A program made the position numbers and the translations under genes. From Heteronotia binoei (taxonomy: Eukaryota): a DNA stretch of 64,000 nt. A model generated the notes under the pieces. The model was given only the letters and a program-made list of their open reading frames with translations. It did not search any database and was not told where the DNA came from. Numbering within the stretch: the stretch's first letter is position 1; every line of letters starts with the position of its first letter. Shown piece by piece: positions 14,821-36,399 of this stretch. Location: NCBI RefSeq assembly GCF_032191835.1, contig NC_083224.1, forward strand, positions 113,150,001 through 113,214,000. Reading direction: 5' to 3'.

Positions 14821-17800
14821 AGAGACCCCCCCCCCCAATTGAAATGCTTTCAGCAGGAAATATAGAAGTTTGGTACGCAAGATAAGCGCAGCAAATCTAC
14901 AAACGTAAAAGGAAAATAATTAAAGCGGAACAGTGGCAGGCGATTTGAAGACTCTAAAACTCTGGATCAAACTGAATGTAAAAACACCCATCGTTTACCT
15001 AGATTTCAGTAAAGTTTTTGACACAGTTCCCCATGATGTTCTGATGGGTAAACTAGAGGATTGTAGACTGGACTCTAGGATAGTTAGGCGGATAGGGAAC
15101 TGGTTGGAGAACTGCACTCAAAGTGTAGTTGTCAATGGCATTTCATCTGAATGGAGGGAGGTGTCCAGTGGGGTGATACAGGGTTTGGTTTTGGGCCCGG
15201 TATTTTTCAAGATTTTAATCAAATTATCTGGATGAGGGTGTTAGAGGGGCTACTCATTAAATTTGCAGATAACACCAAATTGGAAGAAGCAGTGAACACA
15301 ACAGAAGACAAAGATAGAGACAGAATTCAATGAGATCTCAACAAGTGGGTGGAAAAATGGGTGGAAGTGAACAAGATGCAATTAACAAGAATAAGTGCAG
15401 AGTTTCACATCTGGGTAACAAAAATGACTGATACATACTGACGTTACATTGGCGCTCATAAGGGGATTTTATCTTTAGGACCTAAACTAAGGCCAGATAC
15501 ATTTGTGGTCTTCCAAAAATTGTGTCATTCATTTCCATATTGGAACATTTCATTTTGGGTCTTACATTAATTTTTTTATTGATTTATAAGCATAACTGGA
15601 ACTTTGTTGTATTTTGACCTCTGAACAAGGCCTCTGCAGGCCAAAACGCATCAGGTCATGTATGTATCTTTCACATGCATTTGTCACTTTGATGTTTTTA
15701 TGAGGCTTCATTTGGGCCCCTACAAGGTTTTTATGTTTTTGTAATAAACATGTAAACTTCTGATATCTTTAACCTTTGGTCCTTTAATATTCTAAACTTC
15801 AAAGAATTCAGGTTTTCACGGCTGGTAACATCATTAGGGTTTGTAGAATCTTTCGGGATCAAGTGCCGTGTTCTACTGGAGAAAGTTTTCCTTCCAGACG
15901 TTTCGTTCTCAGCTGCGGAGAACATCCTCAGTGGCGTTGCAGCCGGAGCAGGCGCTCAGACCTTCTTGGCTGCACAGCACAGCAGCCAAGAAGGTCTCAG
16001 CGCCTGCTCCGGCTGCAACGCCACTGAGGATGTTCTCCGCAGCTGAGAACGAAACGTCTGGAAGGAAAACTTTCTCCAGTAGAACACGGCACTTGATCCC
16101 GAAAGATTCTACAAACCCTAATTCTAAACTTCCTTTGGGGGTTTTAACAAAAATGAAGAACACACATACTGGATGAGGGATGCTATAATGATGTAAATGT
16201 ATTTAAAGGGCTGTAGCCAGGATTTCATGTTTGGTGGGGCCCATAGCAGGATGTTTTTGATTTGGGGGGGCCAGAGGGACACCCAGTTTGGCAGCCCAGG
16301 GCTCTCGGCACTGTAAGCTGCCTTGAGTTCCACAAACTAACCCCGCTCGCCTGGGCAGTCACAGCAGCTGTTCTCCTCCCACCCCTTTCTTATGTGTCCA
16401 TCTATCAGAGAGACAGAGACCTCTTGACTCTCCCCCCACCTTTGCTCTGCAAGGTGTGTTAGGGAAGGGGAGAGAAAAAAAGTGAAAAGACCAACAGCAA
16501 TGCTACTTGTTGAAAGTGGCGGGCAGCAAAGGGGACAAATTGGGGGCGCTCCAATGGAGGGGCCATACAGTTGGAAGGGGGGGATTTGAAAGGATGGGCC
16601 TGGCCCATCCTTTTATATTTTAAAATATAAAAGTCTCATCCTCAGGGCCACACTGTCCAACAAAGAAGCCTTAGACTGAGCTTGGGCACAATCAGTGGGG
16701 AATGTTAACTGAAGTGTTTGGAATAAAATGCCCTTCTGGGTAGCAGTGTGTATGAACAAGATCTTGGGGTATAGGTGGACTATAAGTTAAATGTAAGCAG
16801 TTAGCGTGATGCAATGACAAAAATGGCTAATGAGATTTTGGGGTGTTATCAGCAGAGGCATAACATCCAAATTGTAAGATGTCATAGTTCTGCTTTACAC
16901 TGTATTGGTCAGGCTGCACCTGGAGTATTGTGTGTTCTGGAGGCCTCACTTCAAGAAAGATGTGGACAGAATGGAGCAGGTGCAGAGGAGAGCAACAAGG
17001 ATAATCTGGGGCTTGGAGACCAAGCCCTATGAGGAAAGACTGAAGGACTTGGGAATGTTCAGTCTGAGGGGGGGGACATGATTGCTCTCTCTAAGTATTT
17101 GAAGGGTTGTCACTTAGAGGAGGGCAAGGAGCTGTTCCTGTTGGCAGCGGAGGAGAGGATTTGCAATAATGGGTTTAAATTAAGGGTGGGAAGGTACCCG
17201 CTGAATATTAGGAAAAACTTTTTTACAGTAAGAGTTGTTCAACAGTGGAATCAGCTACTGAGGGAGGAGGTGAATTTCCCCTCTATGGCAGTCTTTAAGC
17301 AACAGCTGAATCAACACTTGTCACGGATGCTCTAGGCTGATCCTGCACTGAGCATGGGGTTGGACTAGATGGCCTGTGTGGCCCCTTCCAACTCTATGTT
17401 TCTAGTGTGCTGTACATATAATGTCAGAATCTGGATACAAGTATCTTCTCTTCCTTAATCCCAAGAATCCCTTTGGTTTACAGTGCAGTAGCCTCTGTCT
17501 AAATAAATATTACTCCAGATTGGGCTGACTCTAGATAATTCTAGTTACTTAGAACCAGTGCGACCATTTTGGTTGCTAGGCCCAAAGATACAGTGAGCTC
17601 AGTTCAACTCTGAGCAGCCTGAAGTTACCAAGACGTCCTAAGATACAGAGTTGCTGCTTTCTACTCCGGAGAAAGAATATACCACTGTGTCGTGAACGTT
17701 ACAGAGGCTCAAAACTATGCATCAAGTTGCAAATATTTATTTTAATGCTTCTTTTTCTCTGGAGCCTTAGAGAACAAGAAGCATTAAAATAAATATTTGG

Positions 17801-23806: not shown

Positions 23807-24234
23807 ATGGAATCTGTGTATATCCAGGAAAATGGGCAGCTGTATAGATTAAATCAGGCTTCAGGTGGAGTAAACAACCATGCTTTGAAACCAAAGCCTT
23901 CAAGACTGTTTTCCAAAGGATTTTCTGTTGAGCTCTGTATGAACAGGGAAAATGATAATGGCAGGACAGATCACTTCATCTTCACTTACACAAAGGAGGG
24001 AAATCTTCGCTATTCTGCTAAATCTCTCTTCAGCCTAATCTTAAATTACATTGCAGACAACATTCATCATGTTGATTCACTGATTGGCTTTCCAGAGCAG
24101 ATTGGAGAAAAGCTTTTCTATGCTGCTGATGCAAGACAAAAGTTTACAGATCCAAGAACAGGACTCAGAGCTTTGCAAAAATTTACTGATGCTTATGGAA
24201 GTTTAGTACTTCAGATACTGTGTTTGAAAAATAG
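23807..24234 (+). CDS. LRRC42: LRRC42 first coding exon (acceptor at 23758/23759)
   Basis: ORF 23807..24238; donor AG|gtaggt. Confidence 0.92.
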
Positions 24235-25548
24235 GTAGGTACTCAAGCAAAAAACCCTCAAGGACTTGCAGAGGGCATCTTATTTTCCCCTCTCCTACTA
24301 TTTCATCTTTTCCTTCCCTGAAGTTAACCTAGCTTCTCTCCTTTGTTGTGCTTCCTTCCCTCTTTCCCACCCACTAGCCAACCCATTTTCCCCTCTGTCT
24401 TCAATTTTCCCTCCTTCTCTCCTCTGGCACACTCTCCCTGGAAAAACTGTGGCCAATTTGTGCAGTGCCATCCAGGGCCAGTTACATGGTGGGGAACTGG
24501 AAAGACATGTAGGTGGCACCTCACTCCTTCCCACACTATTTACTCTTTGCTCATACCCTCACCTTTCCTTTCCCCTCCCCTCTCATTCCACCCATCAAGC
24601 AACCAATCTTTTATCTGCCCCCCCCCATCTTCAGCTATATACTATTATTTATTTACTTCATTTATAATCCTTCCTTTCTTCATATCTCCTTGCTTCCATT
24701 TTATCTTCTTTCCTTTCTGTCAAGCAAGCAATGCTAGAGAGCCAGTGTTAAGAGCAGCGGACTCTAATCTGGAAAATTTGGTTTGTTTCCCTACACCTCC
24801 ACATGATTCCTGCCGGGTGACCTTGGGCCTGTCACAGTTCTCTCAGAACTCTCTCAGCCCCACCTACCTTGCAAGGTTGTGGGGAGAGAAAGGGAAAGTA
24901 TTTGTAAGCTGCTTTGGACTCCTTAAGGTAGAGAAAAGTGGGGTATAAAAGCCAACTCTTCATCATCATCCTCACAACAACCCTATAAGGCAGGTTAGGC
25001 TGAGAGTGTGTGACTGATTCATGGTCACCAAGTAAGTTCCATGGCAGAGTGGTGATTCTAACCTGGGTCCAGTATCCTAGTTTGAAACTGTAACCACTAT
25101 ATAACACTGGCTTTCATGGGGTGGCTGCTGTTGAACAGCAGCAAGCAGCCCGCCCTTGGTGAGTCATGCAAATCATATGTAGCAAGTCACTGCTGCTGGC
25201 AGGCCTGGACTATGAATCCTCCCTTAAATGCCAAAGCACCCCTGGAAAGGGCGCTACCCCCTCGCCATGTTTTGTATTACATAAACCAAGGCTTGAAGGC
25301 TGAAAATACTATTGTGGTTGCCTAGCAGTTCCCACAGCTACAGGTACAGTCTCTGTTATTTTAAGGAATTTTTTTTTCAGATTTTTCTGAAAACCTGGGG
25401 CTTTTCTCAGGTTTGTAGAAAGATCTGTTTCTCTGTTTATAGTCCCAGTCTCCAAATGTAAGTATCCAGAAATAGGATCACATTGAGATTTCTTGTTTCA
25501 TGTTGTACAAACTGTTCTCAAGTGAAGCTTGCCATACTTCATTACAGT

Positions 25549-25595
<47 letters not shown>

Positions 25596-28500
25596 AAAAT
25601 ATATATATATAAATATATATATATATAAATATATATATATATAAAAGCTCAGGCTGACCCAGGCTCATCAGATCTTGGAAACTAAGCAGGGTCAGCTGTG
25701 GCTCAGTGGTAGAGCATCTGCTTAGCATGCAGTAGGTCCCATACTCAGTCCCTGGCATCTCCTGCTTAAAAGATGAAGTAGGTGATGTGAAAGACCTTTG
25801 CTAGAAATCCTGGACAGCTACTGATAGTCTGAGTAAACAATACAGGCCTTGATGGACCAAGAGTCTGATTCAATATAAGGCAGCTTCATGTGTTAATTTG
25901 TCCCTGATTTCTATTGACCACCAAGGAAGTCCAGAGTCATGATGCAGAGGAAGGCAATAGCAAACCACCTCTGAAGTCTCTTCCCCTGAAAACCCTACGG
26001 AGTTGCCATAAGTTGTCTGTAACTTGACAACACTTTCCACCATTGCATTCCTTTGATTGCAAGTTCCTCAGGATTTTTCTCTCTTTTTTGCTTATGCTCC
26101 TTAATGCAGGTGCCATATTTTAAAAGAGTTTGCTCAGTTTTAGGACATGTTTTCATTATTAATGTACTCTTGGAACAGGCAGTTCATGTGATCTAGAATC
26201 TCTTTAGGATTGCAGTGTATCCTATAGCACTCTTCTCAGTTGTTCAGTATACTTACATGGCTAAGGTATCTTATCAGATAACAGCAGACATTCAAGGCTA
26301 TGTACCACCCTTTAAAAATCAAGGGTAGTTATTTCCAAGCAAATGAATTTAGAACTGAAGCACAAGTCAGACACCTTACAATTTTAAAAGAAATTTAGGA
26401 ACTGATCCCAACTTTCTTCTTGCACTATTTCATATTTCATCCAGATTTGTTTATCTTGGAAGATATGCAGGACATTGCTTAATTAACAAGAAAACATGGC
26501 TTAATTAACAAAGCACAGTTAATCATCTGAATGCATAACATTATACTATTGTTAGTTACTACCTGTTAAACTTATTTATTAGGTATTTTCACTCTGCTTT
26601 TATCTCAGTGGGAATTAAAAGCAGATTCCTTCATTTTCTCTTAACTCAGCTTTTCAAGTTTTTGATGAGGTCTGAAGTCTTTCACAACTGTGGTTTACCA
26701 GTGGGTCCCAACCTTTTTGGCACCAGGGAACGGTTTTGTGGGAGACAGTTTTTCCACAGACCGAGTGAGTGTGTCAGCACTGGGTTTTTTGCTGCTCCAG
26801 ACTGCCCCTCCACTCATGCGGCCCATCTCTGTCCCTCATGGGGGTCTTTAAATGGGGGGGAGACTGGGGCCGTTTCTGCCACCTCCCCACTAGGTGGCCA
26901 GGCAGCAAAAGTGGCCAATCTGCCTCCCCCTCCCATTTAAAGACCCCTGACAATCATTTGATCCCTGGGGGTCTATAAATGAGGGGTAGGAAGGTTGCAG
27001 CAGCACTTCTTCTTTTGCCCACCTGGGCCCCTGGCAGGCAGAAGGGGTGGTGGGGATGCTCTGCCTCGAAGCAAGACTGTGCTGCCTCTTTTGTCCACCT
27101 GGGTCCTGGGTGGGCGAAAGGGGTGGTGCAGTGCCTCTGTCTCGCTGCCAGTTGCTAACAGGCCACGGACCAGACCGGGGGGTTGGGGACCCCTGGTTTA
27201 GACAGTCCTTCCCCTTACCAAGACTATTTTTTCTGTATCTGGCTTTTCATCCATTACGTTACAGATTTGCACTACTGACTGTGCAAAAGAATAGAGCAAA
27301 ATCAGAAACAGAATCTTGAGCCAGGGCATAAACATCACATCCAGAGGAGTCCTCAAGACAGACTAAACTTCTTAGAATGTTTCCTGCCTATAACACTGAC
27401 AGCCATAGGAATGGAAGATAGTGAACAGGTTGTAGATTCTTACCTTTGTTTTTTGTACTCTTTTATAGATATCTGGTTATTTCTGAAAAACTTGAAGAAA
27501 TTAAATCTTTTCGGAATTTGACATGTTTGGATTTGTCATGTTGTAAACTTGGAGATGACCATGAGCTGCTAGAACATATTACCAAGGAGACGCTATCTAG
27601 GTACAAGTTCACTGTGGGAAAAATCAATACACTACTGTTTTGTTTCCTGGTGACTAAAAAGAACTGGGAGAGTTTGAAATTATTATTTTAGTATAGCCAG
27701 AGCTTCTTTTGCAGAAAAAGCTCAGAAGGAACTCATTTGAATATTAGGCCACACCCTGACATTACCATTGTTTTGCATTGGGCTTTTTTTGTAGAAAAAG
27801 CCCAGCAGGACCTCATTTGCATATTAGGCCACACCCCTGACACCAAGCTGGCTGGAACTGCATTCCTGTGCATTCCTGCCCCCCAAAAGTCATGAGTATA
27901 GCAAGTCTGGAAAAAAAACTTCAAAGCTCTCCTGTGTTGGCTTTACAAAGTTCCCTTTTCAGATTGACCCTTATTCTTAGAATTAATGTTGCAAGTTGGT
28001 GTTTATTTATTTATTTATTTATTACTTTACATTTATATCCCGCCCTCTCCGCAAGCGGACTCAGGGCGGCTTACAGTATCATAAAAACAATCGATTCCAT
28101 AAAACATATAAAACCATAATACATTTATCAGTTTAAAACTATTACGCTATCTCAATCCAGTGTCAAACGATATGCCTTATGCAAATATATGCTACAGAAA
28201 CCCAATGGCCATATTTGTTTTAATTGCCATTGCATAAGGGCAGGACTTTTTTTCTGGGGGAGCGCGGTGGAATGGAGTTCTGGAACATTTTTGTTGAAAC
28301 AAAATTCTCAAAAAATGTTTAAAAGTTTCTGAGGGATACCCATGTGTTTCTCCTTAATTTCCCTCTTGAGAGTTCTGGCACCTCTTTTTCCAGGAAAAAA
28401 CACCCGCATAAGGCATATGGAAAGGTCAGTATTTCACTTCGTTCTTGGCTTTAGAAGACATTCAGAAGCTAGGATTGCAACCTCCTGAAGAAAAAAATGT

Positions 28501-31500
28501 CCTGTCCCTTTTAACAGAGATTTAATAGGATTTAATAGATGTTATTTACTAGGTGGTCTTATTTACCTCCATGCAATGAAAAATTTAAGCTGTCCATTTC
28601 CACCCATCAAGTTTGTATTACAATCCTTTTCCTCAGGCCTGTTGGCAACCATATCATTAGCAGCAAGAAGCTCACTTGCTGCTTCTGCGTAACTCCAAAG
28701 TATAAAAGGAAAGACTGATCCAGTGTATCTCCTAAATCCACTGCATGTGTACATGGTGATGTGAAAGACAGTAATATTTGGGGTGTTTTGTGTTTGGATG
28801 TTTATATATTTATGCCTTTTTAAGACATAACCATGGTGCACTCTGCAAGAAGGGGAAGAAGCAGACTGGAGAACTGAAGTATTTTGGTTCTGAAGGTGTT
28901 GTAGGTGTGTTTTTTAAAAATCAAAAGTTGATATTTACAGCATTTCCTGCCTCTTTTCCTGATTGGAGTGTAACAATGACCTATGTCAAAAGAACAAAGT
29001 TTGAGTCCAGTGCCATCTTTAAGACCAACATAGTTTTATTCAAAGTATAAGCTTCTTGTGCATGCGAACTTCTTCAAATGTTAAATAACGTTATTGGACC
29101 TTTGCTTAGGATTAGCGGTTAATACAAGTGCAGAGATAATAGCCCAGTGTTCAATGTTAGGGATTGGCATGAACCTAACCCCCCCTGAACTGAGTCAAAA
29201 GGGCCCCACCCAAACCAACCTGACCTGGTGAGTTCAGTTCCTTCTTTCTCCTGGCTGCAGCTCACTGTGGCTGGGGGATGGGGGGTGGGGGTGAAATCAC
29301 CTAAGAAGGGTTAAATGGCTGGCTTGGAGGGGGGAACTGACAGGTTTAATGGCTGGCAGCGATTTTAACGTAACAGTGAGGATAGGTGTGCCTATCAGCT
29401 GTTAGGTTGAAATGGCTGTAGTTATTTCACCAGTCCATTTCAGTTCCCCCTGCTTCGAAGCTGGGGAGAAGTGAAACCAACCAATGAAATGGCTTGCAGC
29501 TATTTTAACCTAACAGCAGGCTATGTGTGTTTGGACCAGTGAAATGACTCACAGCCATTTAAACCTAATAGCTCACCTATGGACCCCATACTGCTCAGCT
29601 GTTAAGTTTAAATGGCCCTGAACAGCTGAACCAAACCAGACAAAAGCCCAGTAAACATTCAGGGAAGGCGCCTTTCCCAAACAATGGTTCAGGAGCTCCA
29701 AACTGGCCCAAGTTTATGCCAGATTTTGGCTCACGAGCTAGTTTGTACTCATCCCTATTCAATATACAGAACAGCATATTTTGTACTTTATACTGATGGC
29801 ATATGATTTTCACCAAATAAAAGATTTTTACTTTTTTATTATTTAGTAAGGAGTTTTTCATAATTATAAATCTACACTATGTCTCAGCTATGTATTTTCA
29901 CCTGGTATTCTGGCTTTTTTATGGTACCCCGGTTAGCCAGCATGGTGTAGTGGTTAGGAGTGGTGGGCTCTGATCTGGAGAACTGGGTTTGATTCCCCAC
30001 ATCTCCACGTGAAGCCACCTGGGTGACCTTGGGCCAGTCAGTTCCCTCAGAGCTCTCTCAGCTCCTCCTACCTCACAGGATGTCTGTTGTTGGGAGAGGA
30101 ATGGAAGGCAATTGTAAGCTGCACTGAGAATCCTTCAGGTAGTGAAGAGCAAGGTATAACAACCAACTCTTCTTATCAGACAACACAGATATAAAATTCT
30201 AAATTGTTATGATGCTTTTATCATACACGTTAGTGTCGGTAATAAAACATATACCACTTTCAGTCAGGTGAATTATAAAGTGCTGCTGTATATTTTACTG
30301 ATATTAATTTCCACCTTACTCTCATTTAAGCATTCTTAGAACTAGTGTATTTGGGTTTACTTTTGTATTACCAGGCTGCTTTCAAAACTGGAAATGGGGA
30401 GAGTGAAACGGTCTTAACAATTTACATGAAGATCTGGGTTATTTTGAAAACTGACTTTTGCATTTATCCTAGTCTAATTCAGCTTCTTCTGAAAGATAAT
30501 TGCTTATCAGATGCTGGTCTTCGCAAAATGACAGCACCTGTTCGAGTGATGAAACGGGGCCTTGAAAATCTTTCAGTATTAGATTTGTCTTGTGAGTATG
30601 ATTCAGATTAGAATGTATGCATTTGTCTCATAACCCAACATTAATCCTAGTCAATATCAGAAAAGATAATTAATCAAAACTTGATAGTACTGTCTTCCTG
30701 CTAGTAGAAAAAATGGGAGAATTATGACAAACCAATGTATTTGACTGAAATCTCACGTTGTCTGTTTAAGCTAAGAGGTCAGTCAAACGTTACATATTGT
30801 GCAACAGAACTAGGCCATGTTTTGTTGATCTGTATAGAAAGATATTATAATAGCCATTGCGTTTTTTAAAAGTCTTGATTTTTTAAGGCTGTAGTCCTGT
30901 GCACACTTACTGTATGCCTTTTTGAATATAGCAGAACTTACTTTCCAGTTAACAAGCAAGATAGGACTGTAAATGCAAACCTTATTATACATAATATGGA
31001 TCTTTATCTACCATGTAGTTTATGAGGCTGGACATACATGCATTGCCCTGATACTGCACAATCAGTATTTCAACCAAATGGTCATAACCCAAAGGTTCTT
31101 CATGAATTAAATTAAATCCAAGATTATATTTTAAAATTCAGAGAGTTGTGTTCTTCCATTGCCCTGGATGGGGAAAATTGCTTTTGATGAATCAGTCAAG
31201 GAGTCATGCTGGTTGGGGGAAACTCTTCTACTTTCCATTCCTCACTGCAGGCCCCCCCTACTTGTGATGTGTTTTGTTCAGGAAGTTTCTTCAGCCCTCA
31301 GAGTGGAATTTTGAAATAAACAGCACACTGCTGGGCGAAAGGGAAGTAGGGAAAGATCAGCTCCACCCATTTCTCCTGTGGTCTTTGCTGCTGATTCTAA
31401 CCATATCACTCAGCTTCCTCCCCAACATGATAGGACACATCTCATTCATTTTTCTCTGTTAACATGTTTTATAGTCTTCATATTGTCTTTGTTACAGCTT

Positions 31501-33245
31501 AATGTTTAATGTAATATTCTTGACTTGATGTAGGTAATTCAGGAATCACGAATAAAGGAGTTGGGTTCCTTCTTTCCTTCAAAAAGCTAAATTATTTGGA
31601 TCTTTCTGAAACTGGCATTGAGGTAAAAAAAACTTCTGTCCTACTAGACATGTAATATAACATTTGGAGAGGGAAACAAAATTCAATGAATAAACTCCTT
31701 ATTTATAGGAATTTCAAGGAAAAGAAGAAATATATTGTTTTTCTGCATGGTCAAATTCTGTTTGATCATGACTCTTACATTTTCTTTTTTCATTAGGACT
31801 TGATGGTAGCAATTCAGCGGATCCAGAATCAGATAGGTCTAGTTTATTCAGAAGTGCCTCTGAAAGAATTTGAACATAACTGCAAAACAGAGGGATGGGC
31901 AGAGCATGTATGTAAAAATTTACTCCATTAAAACCCATTTCTTGCATTTTTCCATGTGGTAAAAAGTACTGATTTTAAGTAAGGTGTTTGCATCTAAGGA
32001 GATTTTATAAATGTATCAGAAATTCAAGGGATAAAGGTGAATAATCCAGTAATAAATTTGTTTACATTCTTTAACAAAATGTTACATTTCATTAGAAGTA
32101 AGTAAAATAAGAATTATCACCAGAGAGACTTCCACTGTCAAATGGTTATGTCAGTACCTAAACTCAACTGTATATCAGTTTCAACTGCTGTGCTACAGCT
32201 GTTTATTTCTTTTGAGGATCTTGTTTGGCTGTGTAAAGTATAACTGTGATATATTAAAATATGGAACTTAAATCCAGTGTACTTTCACACTGGATATCTA
32301 ACAAGGAATAATGTCCTTAGCTGTTTTTCTTATTATCTTATTGATGACTGATTCTCTTTTTAGACAGTTTTGCAATGGCAGCACATTATCCAAGAAGGAA
32401 TTAAACCACAAAGAAGCTTGAAATCTAGAGCAGCAGCTCAGTATTTCTGTATGTACCTTTATAAGGATTTGTTTGAATGCCAAGGCCACTTTACTGATTT
32501 CTGAAGATGGGGATGTATATTGTTCACTGGTTTACCAGTCCTGTGAAACAGCCACTAACAATTAGAGAAAGGCTTCAGACTTTTTTGAGTGGAGTGACAG
32601 GATACAGACCACTGGAACTACACTTCAAAGAATCTACTTAGACTTAATTTTGAACAAATTATTTGATTCTCCCCTCCCCCACCAAGTTGAAGAGGCAGTC
32701 TGCTTTTGAAAATGAATAATAGCTTGAGGTCGCACTCCTCAGAACACTTTCTTGGCACTAAGCCTCATTGAACAGCATGGGACTTAGTTCAGGTTTGTGC
32801 CCTGTGTCCTTCACAGTAGTCTGGAAAACTGAAAGAAAGCCATGACTCTGCATGCAATTGGTTCCCCAGGTGCTCTGAAATAGCTTCATTAGATCTTGGT
32901 CTGAGATATGAAGCCCTTAATATTGTATATAGGACACAACAGGGCTGAAAACATATAGACAAGTTACAGTAATTCATGGCATCTTTTTTTGCAGATGGAA
33001 AAAGAGCCAGGACCGAAGAACCTTGTGAGTCCCCTCTAGGAGGACAGCATAGAAAGACTTGTGAGAATTTACAGTTTTACAAAACAGCAGAAGCATGCAG
33101 TTTGCCTTTAGTAAAAAAGAAGACTGAATGTAATGAAGAATTACAGAATAAAAGGACTCATTCAGCTGAACCCAAAGAGAAGAGCTTAAAAGCAAAGCAT
33201 CTGGGCCTCTTGATGGAAGACTGGGACTTATTAAATTCTTATTGA
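23807..33245 (+). CDS. LRRC42: Leucine-rich repeat protein 42, 404 aa from ATG 23807 (416 aa if the ancestral position 23771 is used): join(23807-24234,27469-27600,30473-30591,31534-31622,31797-31907,32364-32448,32995-33245)
   Basis: Seven GT-AG exons totalling 1215 nt in phase; FSKGFSVELCMNRE, DHFIFTYTKEGNLRYSAKSLFSL, KDNCLSDAGLRKMTAPVRVMKRGLENL and EDWDLLNSY* match LRRC42 as recalled; AATAAA at 33765-33770. Confidence 0.95.
24735..24965 (+). mobile_element. tRNA/CORE-type SINE
   Basis: Shared body (gggtgaccttgggc..gtcacagttctctcagaactctctcagcccc) with the copy at 29935-30175. Confidence 0.75.
24965..25115 (-). mobile_element. MIR-like CORE SINE fragment
   Basis: atcctcacaacaaccctataagg...gtaaccactat, the typical reverse-complement CORE-SINE pattern. 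Confidence 0.6.
25560..25643. repeat. (TA)n-rich microsatellite
   Basis: Direct inspection. Confidence 0.95.
25645..26042 (+). mobile_element. 5S-rRNA-headed Sauria-type SINE with a nested tRNA SINE (25690-25895)
   Basis: catcagatcttggaaactaagcagggtc (5S-like head), accaccaaggaagtcc, tail aaaccacctctgaa...gaaaaccctacggagttgccataag. Confidence 0.65.
26699..27195. mobile_element. hAT-type non-autonomous DNA transposon
   Basis: TIRs cagtgggtcccaacc / ggttggggacccctg. Confidence 0.7.
27469..27600 (+). CDS. LRRC42: LRRC42 coding exon 2
   Basis: YLVISEKLEEIKSFRNLTCLDLSCCKLGDDHELLEH; tag acceptor, gtacaa donor. Confidence 0.93.
27698..27894. mobile_element. hAT-type MITE, 8-bp TSD AGTATAGC
   Basis: Exact TSD at 27690-27697 and 27895-27902; internal duplicated ctcatttg(c/a)atattaggccacac; family of 10492-10955. 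Confidence 0.8.
28010..28140 (-). mobile_element. L2-type 3' terminal fragment
   Basis: atatcccgccctctcc...cagggcggcttaca with (TTTA)n tail. Confidence 0.65.
28241..28406. mobile_element. hAT-type MITE, TSD cataaggg/cataaggc
   Basis: TIR caggacttttttt / aaaaaacacccg; 7/8 TSD match. Confidence 0.65.
28980..29072 (-). mobile_element. Penelope-type terminal repeat fragment
   Basis: gagtccagtgccatctttaagaccaac...gtataagcttc; family of 3660-4053. Confidence 0.6.
29158..29757. mobile_element. hAT-type non-autonomous element (TAGGGATG-type TIR), TSD ttcaatgt/ttcaatat
   Basis: Termini tagggattggca / gtactcatcccta; 7/8 TSD match. Confidence 0.7.
29935..30175 (+). mobile_element. tRNA/CORE-type SINE
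   Basis: A-box tggtgtagtgg, B-box ggtttgattcc; family of 24735-24965. Confidence 0.78.
30473..30591 (+). CDS. LRRC42: LRRC42 coding exon 3
   Basis: [39 protein letters not shown]; gtgagt donor. Confidence 0.93.
31534..31622 (+). CDS. LRRC42: LRRC42 coding exon 4
   Basis: CNSGITNKGVGFLLSFKKLNYLDLSETGIE; gtaaaa donor. Confidence 0.9.
31797..31907 (+). CDS. LRRC42: LRRC42 coding exon 5
   Basis: DLMVAIQRIQNQIGLVYSEVPLKEFEHNCKTEGWAEH; gtatgt donor. Confidence 0.92.
32364..32448 (+). CDS. LRRC42: LRRC42 coding exon 6
   Basis: TVLQWQHIIQEGIKPQRSLKSRAAAQYF; gtatgt donor. Confidence 0.9.
32995..33245 (+). CDS. LRRC42: LRRC42 coding exon 7 (last)
   Basis: YGKRARTEEP...LQFYK...EDWDLLNSY*. Confidence 0.93.
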
Positions 33246-34339: not shown

Positions 34340-34815
34340 TTTATTTATTTATTTATATTAAGATTTATACCCCGCCCTTCTCACCTAAGTGTCTCAGGGC
34401 GGCTTACAACATGATAAATTAGACAACTTCAGATTGAAACATTTAAAATACAATTAAACTATAGGTTAATAAAAAGCAGGATAAAATAGGATAATTAAAA
34501 CCGGCGGCCTATAAATACATTTTGTTCCATCCAGGATGTTTTCATTGTCAGTTAATGTCATAGGCCTGCCGGAAGAGGACTGTCTTACAGGCCCTGCGGA
34601 ATTGCCCTAGATCCCGCAGGGCCCGTACCTCTTCCGGCAGCTGGTTCCACCAGTAAGGTGCCGTTGTTGAGAAGGCCCGGTCCCTGGTGGATTTTAGACG
34701 GGCCTCCTTTGGCCCGGGGACTACCAACAGGTTTTGTGAGCCTGAGCGTAGTACTCTCTGGGGAACGTGTGGGGAGAGACGGTCCCTAAGGTAGGCAGGT
34801 CCTAGGCCATATAGG
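34340..34815 (-). mobile_element. L2 LINE 3' end
   Basis: ORF 34548..34856 YLRDRLSPHVPQRVLRS...RAFSTTAPYWWNQLP...FRRACKTVLF, plus 3' tail. Confidence 0.85.
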
Positions 34816-34887
34816 AAAATGTATGGGGTGAGAAAATGTATGGGGTGAGAAATCAAAACATTAGTTTTGATGAGAAATCAGTGTTAT

Positions 34888-35380
34888 TAGGGTTTGTAGA
34901 ATCTTTCGGGCTCAAGTGCCGTGTTCTACTGGAGAAAGATTTCCTTCCAGACGTTTCGTTCTCCGCTGCGCAGAACATCCTCAGTGGCGTTGCAGCCGGA
35001 GCAGGCGCTCTGACCTTCTTGGCTGCTGTGCATTGAGCGCACAGCAGCCAAGAAGGTCAGAGCGCCTGCTCCGGCTGCAACGCCACTGAGGATGTTCTCC
35101 GTAGCTGAACATATTATATTTATGAATCACCCAATCCCTGCTACTGCAGGGCTCTAGGCAATGCACACACAGTTCCACAGGGCCTGCTGTGCGCTCAATG
35201 CACAGCAGCCAAGAAGGTCAGAGCGCCTGCTCCGGCTGCAACGCCACTGAGGATGTTCTGCACAGCGGAGAACGAAACGTCTGGAAGGAAAACTTTCTCC
35301 AGTAGAACACGGCACTTGAGCTCGAAAGATTCTACAAACCCTAATGATGTTACCAGCCGTGAAAACCTGAAATCTTTGAT
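34888..35380. mobile_element. Penelope-type inverted pLTR insertion with three pLTR segments, a captured 81-bp genomic fragment and a 12-bp TSD
   Basis: TSD AATCAGTGTTAT at 34876-34887 and 35381-35392; same family as 15801-16120; hammerhead cores at 34947-34987(-) and 35244-35284(+). Confidence 0.85.
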
Positions 35381-36399
35381 AATCAGTGTTATGACTATTC
35401 ATATAACACTGATTCATTGGCTAGTTGTTAACATCCTCCTCCCCTTAAAGTAACAGATAGGTCACCTGAGATCTATAACAAAAGCCCACCAGTTGAGGAC
35501 CCCTGAGGAATCACAGGAGAGGAGGGACAATCTGGAAGTCCTCCTTCATTCAGGCTCCTCTAATCTCTAGGAGGAGAGATAAGGCTCCCACCCCCCTTAC
35601 CTGATAACTGACTGTAACATTCTGTTGGAACATATTATATTTATGAATCACCCAATCCCTGCTACTGCAGGGCTCTAGGCAATGCACACACAGTTCCACA
35701 GGGCCTGCAAAACGGCACTTTTCCACCACGCTTTTTCATAATGACATCTACAGCAATGAATTGGGCCCAGAAACACCACCAGTGGCTTGTCTGGAACCTC
35801 CAGAAGTTTAAAAATTGACCAGTCTGATTACCACCACTAATATCTTGTTGTTTGGATACATCAAATTAGCACCAGATGTTTTAAATGTTTTAATGTTTTT
35901 ATATTTAATATTGTTTATATTTACTGTTAAATGGTTGGGCATGCTATTGCTGACCCTCATATTGTTAGCCGCCCTGAGCCTGCCATGGCGGGGAGGGTGG
36001 GATATAAATTAAATAAATAAATATGTAAAACCACAGCAAAACATATTAGAAGCAAGTTTCAGGACATAGTAATCCAATGGCGAATAATAAATAACTCCAA
36101 TCCTGACTGCCAACTACATTCACAGGCAGGGAGGAAGAGGACAAAAAAGTGGAAAAAATAAAGAATCTTCAAGAGGTTATTAAAATCTGAAAGTCATATC
36201 TGAGAATTTTTAAAGTATACATTTTATTTCAAACATTTTTAATGTGGCCTTTCCATCCAATCAGGATCCACAAGGTGGCAAACATTAGACACATTAACAT
36301 TTAAACAATAAAAATATTTTTAAAATTGTAAAATGCAGTTAAAAACATACAAACAGTACTAGGAGGATCAATAATCATAATTGGGTGTATGCCAGACAA

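Follow-up and report, generated by a model that had tools for sequence, protein, structure and literature searches.

A Poseidon-like insertion in Heteronotia binoei with a copy of its own flank at the inter-arm joint

How Penelope-type elements (PLEs) complete their integration, and what causes their inverted and tandem structures, is stated as an open question in the PLE papers (PMC8557442; PMC11167929). Inserted copies typically adjoin an inverted, 5′-truncated copy and are tailed at just one end (Craig et al. 2021, PMC8557442; PMC11167929). The Poseidon protein of Anolis cleaves and extends both target strands (Frangieh et al. 2024, PMC11167929). Poseidon_Ac has two neighbouring internal start sites of reverse transcription, which flank the tail of 30-40 nt (PMC11167929). 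The Poseidon_Ac ORF begins at stem II of a hammerhead motif, with the cut site 26 bp past the start codon (PMC11167929; PMC8557442).

A related arrangement is known from L1, where twin priming (Ostertag and Kazazian 2001, as cited in PMC11702581) leaves inverted and direct segments of one element inside a single target-site duplication (TSD). In L1, the secondary cDNA has been reported to switch templates, the inversion joint to be closed by end joining, and templated insertions to occur (Mendez-Dorantes et al. 2024 preprint, PMC11702581). The insertion described here likewise holds inverted and direct segments within one TSD and appears to share with L1 the priming of a second cDNA from the reciprocal end, the resolution of the inversion joint by end joining, and occasional template switches and templated insertions. 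In L1 the second cDNA starts at varying sites selected through microhomology, but here it starts at a fixed one, element base 160-168; the arms of an L1 insertion have little or no sequence in common, whereas here they span an identical stretch of 150 nt, making a palindrome, and poly(A) is absent. The mechanism is twin-priming-like without the element being a member of that class, as the fixed start of the inverted arm in all sampled copies fits a specific second start site.

End joining by Pol theta generates templated insertions through snap-back and trans synthesis, and filler DNA occurs at T-DNA junctions too. The fillers reported below resemble such products in their 2-5-nt microhomologies, in being copied from the flank in direct or inverted orientation, and in implying several rounds of synthesis and dissociation. 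As in templated-insertion end joining, the filler of the insertion under study is copied from nearby sequence and bounded by microhomology (GA and CTGC). Typical Pol theta fillers are shorter and come from tens of base pairs away, whereas those found here measure 47-98 nt and stem from 130-360 bp, once from 97 kb. A further difference is that one piece at this locus appears to have been copied from an element template.

Anatomy of the insertion and its family

The window analysed is a stretch of 64,000 nt from Heteronotia binoei (assembly GCF_032191835.1, NC_083224.1, contig 2, positions 113,150,001-113,214,000 of the forward strand). It contains a young Penelope/Poseidon-type insertion, in which five parts lie between the TSDs: an inverted arm, a partial forward copy, an 81-mer, a fold-back stub and a full forward arm (Table 1, where element bases are numbered with window position 35184 as 1). 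The original prediction had described an insert between 12-bp TSDs, and the two are perfect repeats. It had also placed the parts in the order inverted, partial forward, 81-mer and forward. That order stands, except that the full forward arm was thought to follow directly upon the 81-mer; nine nucleotides of fold-back stub intervene.

Table 1. Features of the insertion in the window, and family copies with fillers of unique sequence
Feature	Position	Strand or orientation	Description
Left TSD AATCAGTGTTAT	34876-34887	+	Exact 12-nt repeat of 35381-35392
Inverted arm	34888-35038	-	Antisense of element bases 160 to 10; 98% reverse complement of forward arm
Partial forward copy	35039-35108	+	70 nt, element bases 17-86, repeats forward arm
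Captured 81-mer	35107-35187	+	Exact copy of 35628-35708; overlaps neighbours by GA (left) and CTGC (right)
Fold-back stub CTGCTGTGC	35184-35192	-	9 nt, reverse complement of element bases 17-25
Full forward arm	35193-35380	+	Extra G, then CTCAATG to TCTTTGAT; >650 family candidates, 95-98% identity
Tail	35346-35380	+	35 nt, forward arm only
Right TSD AATCAGTGTTAT	35381-35392	+	Family reads depart at 35381/35382
81-mer source	35628-35708	+	5 unique nt, 56-nt fragment of old repeat A (35633-35688), first 25 nt of repeat B
Filler, window copy	35107-35187	direct	81/81; source 235 nt past right TSD
Filler, L077	C7:56128416	direct	47/47; source 379 bp downstream, start to start
Filler, L076	C15:56245749	direct	50/53; source 235 nt left of insertion
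Filler, L073	C1:5589301	inverted	57/62; source ~360 nt left of insertion, best match genome-wide
Filler, L074	C1:254352967	inverted	98/98; source 96.7 kb away, without element there

The two arms mirror one another closely: the reverse complement of 35184-35345 corresponds to 34886-35047 over 162 nt (98%). Many short reads of the family depart at 34886/34887 into AT-rich sequence outside the consensus. The inverted arm is tail-less and complete to the 5′ end of the RNA, and both arms reach this same end, CTCAATG, with one extra base added. This suggests the joining of two finished cDNA ends rather than of a processed break. A 70-bp hairpin arises where the partial copy pairs with the inverted arm's inner end. 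At 34993-35077, Rfam scans gave only sub-threshold matches to miRNA precursors, such as mir-3179 (57 bits versus a gathering score of 90), and these reflect solely that hairpin. The stub mirrors the hairpin tip (35023-35047): with GGCTGCTGTGC-ATTGAGC-GCACAGCAGCC in the left centre and CTGCTGTGC-GCTCAAT-GCACAGCAGCC at the right stub, the two are one hairpin in opposite orientations. At the position of the stub, other family copies continue into ...CCCTGGCCCCA, into flank or into an inverted arm, and not into CTGCTGTGC.

The target site itself contains a small palindrome at 35381-35414, in which AATCAGTGTTAT is followed by 10 nt and then by ATAACACTGATT. On the bottom strand, the nick follows ATT, a motif for which the endonuclease of Anolis Poseidon is reported to have a preference.

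From its sequence, the element is identified as a Poseidon-like PLE by its CTGAGG-ATG / GAAACGTC layout, its similarity to Poseidon_Ac, the tail on one arm and the inverted arm, which upholds the Penelope-type identity proposed earlier. On the forward arm, the landmarks of the putative hammerhead are CTGAGGA (35247-35253), GAAAC (35274-35278) and GTC (35279-35281), and the ORF starts with the ATG at 35253. The ORF start remains open to the end of the unit, and GAAACGTC ends 29 nt into it. As in Poseidon_Ac of Anolis carolinensis, CTGAGGA overlaps the ATG, and GAAACGTC comes some 26 nt further on. An alignment is also possible around the two RT start sites, where 35319-35380 shares 45 identities in 68 columns with nt 61-121 of Poseidon_Ac, a score reached by none of 2000 shuffles. 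The likeness extends to a 35-nt tail at one end only, an inverted 5′-truncated copy adjoining the forward copy, AT-rich flanks and the apparent use of both strands as primers. Unlike Poseidon_Ac, to which it is only distantly similar in sequence, the Heteronotia family consists mostly of 188-nt units with one fixed 5′ end. The hammerhead boxes, with a stem II of 5-6 bp, were read from the sequence; the Rfam hammerhead models gave no match in the region or in pieces of 150-200 nt at E values up to 10. Minimal PLE hammerheads have a very short stem III. Alignment of the 42-aa ORF start to the N-terminus of Poseidon_Ac by BLASTP returned nothing, and no RT/endonuclease ORF was seen in the fetched copies, the longest of which reach only ~330 nt upstream of the common 5′ end.

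The family is large. Besides the candidates for the forward unit found in the genome search (Table 1), read depth at ~0.7x coverage indicates on the order of a thousand copies within 3% divergence. The short copies (L032-L060 and the window's forward arm at 35193) begin with CTCAATG, usually after one extra base that is often G, while longer copies continue upstream as ...CCCTGGCCCCA-CTCAATG. The extra base could be a copied cap or a non-templated addition. The fixed 5′ end implies that the family has a discrete RNA of 188 nt, which acts in the manner of a non-autonomous unit. An inverted arm adjoins the forward arm in 20 of 29 other sampled copies. In each of these 20, element base 160-168 marks the end of the inverted arm, whereas the forward arm runs to 197, so that the last 35 nt represent a tail on one end only; the tail is indeed confined to one arm in 20/20, and in L074 it sits on the opposite arm. 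TSDs measure 12 bp in the copy under study and 10-11 bp in L073, L074, L076 and a second copy in the window. The joints between the arms of ordinary copies are full of short self-templated duplications.

That second copy, at 15799-16122, consists of a tail-bearing inverted arm and a forward arm joined almost directly. Its TSD is TTCTAAACTTC, its stem II is of the majority type and its arms are 99.3% alike.

Origin of the 81-mer and of the partial copy

The 81-mer matches the downstream flank at all 81 positions, and a search of the whole 2.63-Gb assembly found the full-length sequence at two sites only, 35107 and 35628. The identity claimed originally is thereby confirmed, and so is the distance of 247 bp, provided that it is counted from the end of the element at 35380 to 35628; measured from the right TSD, the source begins 235 nt away. 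Within the 81-mer, bases 6-61 come from a fragmentary old repeat (>400 candidates at 86-96% identity), and a second, SINE-like repeat begins at about base 57 (window 35684) and continues past 35900 (>1000 candidates). The two repeats meet within the 81-mer at a junction specific to this locus, and the segment lies outside the element family. The same point identifies the downstream copy as the source, because repeat B continues unbroken beyond 35708 and the 81-mer spans the locus-specific junction. Derivation of the flank copy from the insert was ruled out by the uninterrupted course of repeat B. An ordinary place for the 81-mer in the family consensus, the condition under which the earlier interpretation was to fall, was likewise ruled out, as the segment is absent from every other copy examined.

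Both junctions of the 81-mer lie on short matches, as had been predicted. On the right, CTGC (35184-35187) is common to the end of the 81-mer and to the segment that follows; on the left, the overlap is GA (35107-35108) and falls inside the 3′ strand of the putative hammerhead stem II. Short reads, drawn from three whole-genome runs and one contig set, cover unique sequence at 0.4-0.7x per run, and reads of the 81-mer fit both places.

The partial forward copy has a history of its own. Two bases of the putative hammerhead stem II set the outer arms apart: G at 35260 and G at 35267, matched by C at 34971 and C at 34964 in the inverted arm. No further instance of the 28-mer bearing both bases turns up in the assembly; the combination is present in none of ~40 other copies, and nearly all family reads show C and T. 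The last 10 nt of the partial copy have these family-majority bases, C at 35099 and T at 35106. With arms that share private bases and a partial copy of the majority type, either a further element template was used or the arms were later homogenised by gene conversion. The private variants of the arms need one RNA source absent from the assembly, or later gene conversion. Other element templates are at hand during retrotransposition, which fits the majority-type partial copy.

Two other origins of the partial copy were considered and rejected. A fold-back of the inverted arm, whether faithful or error-ridden, was set aside, as two of the three differences restore the majority base where the arms are unique; on a rough estimate, the chance of both restorations arising by fold-back error is below 1%. 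The copy at 15799-16122 is of the majority type, yet it lacks the T at the position of 35102 and receives no specific support as the template.

Fillers elsewhere in the family

The original prediction called for the origin of internal non-element segments in other copies to be traced. All five fillers of unique sequence that were tested, including that of the window copy, have their source on the same chromosome, four of them within ~130-360 bp of the insertion and one at 96.7 kb (Table 1). In all four other copies the filler occupies the inter-arm joint, and neither arm has lost its 5′ end, or the extra base, in any of the five filler-bearing copies. The survey comprises five informative fillers, and its search patterns required intact arm ends, so that it is biased toward this feature. 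The joints of the L074 filler carry the microhomologies ATTGA and TCAAT, while those of L076 and L077 show 0-1 nt. Pooled over the five copies, fillers differ from their sources at 8 of 341 positions and arms differ from each other at 21 of 722. The divergence of the fillers is comparable to, and no lower than, that of the arms, which makes the fillers about as old as the insertions.

The pattern search returned 841 loci with 30-330 nt between the inner arm ends, most of which are longer copies that extend upstream. A stricter pattern, which demanded two complete arms and 28 nt or more between them and excluded the long form, returned 13 loci; foreign filler is present in about seven. Of the 49 loci listed for contig 1 with gaps of 30 nt or more, 3 had foreign filler; by rough extrapolation, this suggests some tens of filler copies genome-wide. 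Two further fillers are pieces of abundant repeats (~20,000 and ~200 copies) whose origin is not assignable, and they were left out of the tally. The tally of five also excludes the fillers at C10:97929324 and C1:98480980.

Two side observations concern the C7 copy. The loci C7:56128404-56128480 and C21:21173555-21173631 have the same arms and the same 52-nt filler, and the filler source exists only near the former; the C21 copy therefore arose later, by duplication of the composite or of a portion of the locus. At positions 430-447 of L077 (C7:56128150-56129000), the forward arm breaks off at about element base 120, and a local 9-nt duplication presents AGAACACGG twice. As L077 is without tail and right TSD, a deletion followed or accompanied its insertion.

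Joining of the cDNA ends

A single account, to which a probability of roughly 0.65 is assigned, covers these observations: both nicked strands primed reverse transcription, and the ends of the full-length cDNAs were joined through microhomology-guided template switches, one of them onto the flank. A short, 5′-complete transcript of Poseidon type would have been inserted at a 12-bp staggered cut. On the bottom strand, synthesis from the outer start site would yield the tail and the forward arm; on the top strand, the inner start site, ~35 nt upstream, would yield the tail-less inverted arm. Each cDNA would then extend to the 5′ end of the RNA and add one base. As both cDNA 3′ ends are antisense, they would be unable to pair with one another and could be joined only after template switches. 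One end may first have folded back on itself (GCACAGCAG), then copied 70 nt from another element template of the majority type, and then 81 nt from the sequence 235 nt beyond the right TSD, before a closing anneal through CTGC. The 81-nt template could have been single-stranded resected flank or nascent + strand RNA from LRRC42. Direct fillers may form when a nascent end copies the single-stranded 3′ tail exposed by resection on the opposite side, and inverted fillers when an end folds back on its own side.

A jump onto local DNA and back during the insertion event, as first proposed, is the best-supported reading, and the four other copies with same-chromosome fillers at the inter-arm joint point the same way. 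The path is more complex than the single jump envisaged: the local jump holds, whereas the stub and the partial copy, probably taken from a different element template, call for more switches, and the template could have been nascent + strand RNA. Capture probably took place at the time of insertion. The polymerase would be the reverse transcriptase of the element or a host end-joining enzyme such as Pol theta, and its 81-nt template may have been DNA or RNA.

Jumping from RNA to RNA by the element's reverse transcriptase in one run, from the element to local sequence and on to a second element RNA, is a tentative variant of this reading in which the local template is nascent + strand transcript of the LRRC42 3′ UTR or read-through region; we regard it as rather unlikely. 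LRRC42 does lie on the + strand, with its last coding exon ending at 33242 and the site 1.6-2.5 kb downstream, and when the bottom-strand cDNA is followed, every long template would be sense RNA. L1 forms chimeras with other RNAs. The distances of the sources pull in both directions: a long tethered transcript explains the 96.7-kb filler more easily than end resection, and this source favours RNA or chromatin looping, whereas four of five sources at ~130-360 bp suit resected flank DNA better than a transcript tens of kilobases long. Furthermore, the 9-nt stub would still require a DNA self-template, and no RNA run was listed as containing the flank.

That the 70 and 81 nt were added some time after insertion is unlikely, though several points speak for this alternative. 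A plain palindrome would have broken or stalled replication, and microhomology-mediated template switching (Pol theta end joining, FoSTeS or MMBIR) would have supplied the 70 nt from another family copy and the 81 nt from the flank. Fragility is well known for palindromes whose arms measure 150 bp, the microhomologies at the joints are as short as 2 and 4 nt, and fillers templated by the nearby flank are a hallmark of such repair, expected precisely at the inter-arm joint. An ectopic palindromic copy of the family could also have templated a piece made up of the centre plus the partial forward copy. Two copies have fillers 100% identical to their sources while their arms differ by 2.6-4%, as later addition would predict; over all five copies, the pooled filler divergence given above is comparable to that of the arms instead of falling below it. 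Breaks usually lose bases, and yet the arms are intact to the 5′ end in every filler-bearing copy. The right stub with its complete forward arm resembles an independent cDNA end, with its loop in the orientation opposite to that of the left centre, and the joints of ordinary copies are messy already, a feature that the PLE literature attributes to transposition. An error of assembly or consensus, in which the palindrome misled the assembler or polisher and the nearby 81 bp were pasted in, is highly improbable. It draws on a published warning that complex PLE structures cause assembly problems and on the low short-read coverage (0.4-0.7x per run), which could not verify the joints. Against it, the joints fall on microhomologies, the structure is bounded by perfect TSDs, and its whole length of ~500 bp fits well inside one long read. 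Like fillers occur at four other loci with varied distance, orientation and age, some of them diverged (92-94% identity), and an artefact would not age.

On the favoured reading, this is an event of a known kind, a retroelement insertion with both-strand priming and template switching, and its value is that of a footprint of the PLE joining step. Flank-derived filler at a PLE inter-arm joint was not met in a limited look at the PLE literature. The filler-bearing copies bear on PLE integration in that complete cDNA arms appear to be joined under the guidance of microhomology by a polymerase that can read the target flank up to a few hundred bases away. They offer a countable signature (filler length, distance, side, orientation and microhomology) by which reverse transcriptase can be tested against host end joining, and DNA against RNA template. 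A wider proposition, for which the odds appear even, is that the joining of PLE cDNAs regularly passes through an open intermediate, from which the polymerase reaches single-stranded flank DNA or tethered nascent RNA within a few hundred bases, occasionally ~100 kb away in cis, and that a few per cent of insertions therefore carry a piece of their own neighbourhood. Were this so, the fillers would serve as footprints, left in nature, of the spatial layout of the second half of PLE integration and of the enzymes at work in it.

As for the surroundings, LRRC42-like exons lie on the + strand at 23807-24238, ~27460-27600, ~30500-30600, ~31520-31650, 31797-31928 and 32973-33242. The insertion stands 1.6 kb past the LRRC42 stop codon (33242), possibly in the 3′ UTR or a read-through region, and is probably neutral for the host. 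Shortly upstream of it, at 34815-34848, the 17-mer GAAAATGTATGGGGTGA forms an exact tandem duplication where an abundant repeat ends and family reads depart (34815).
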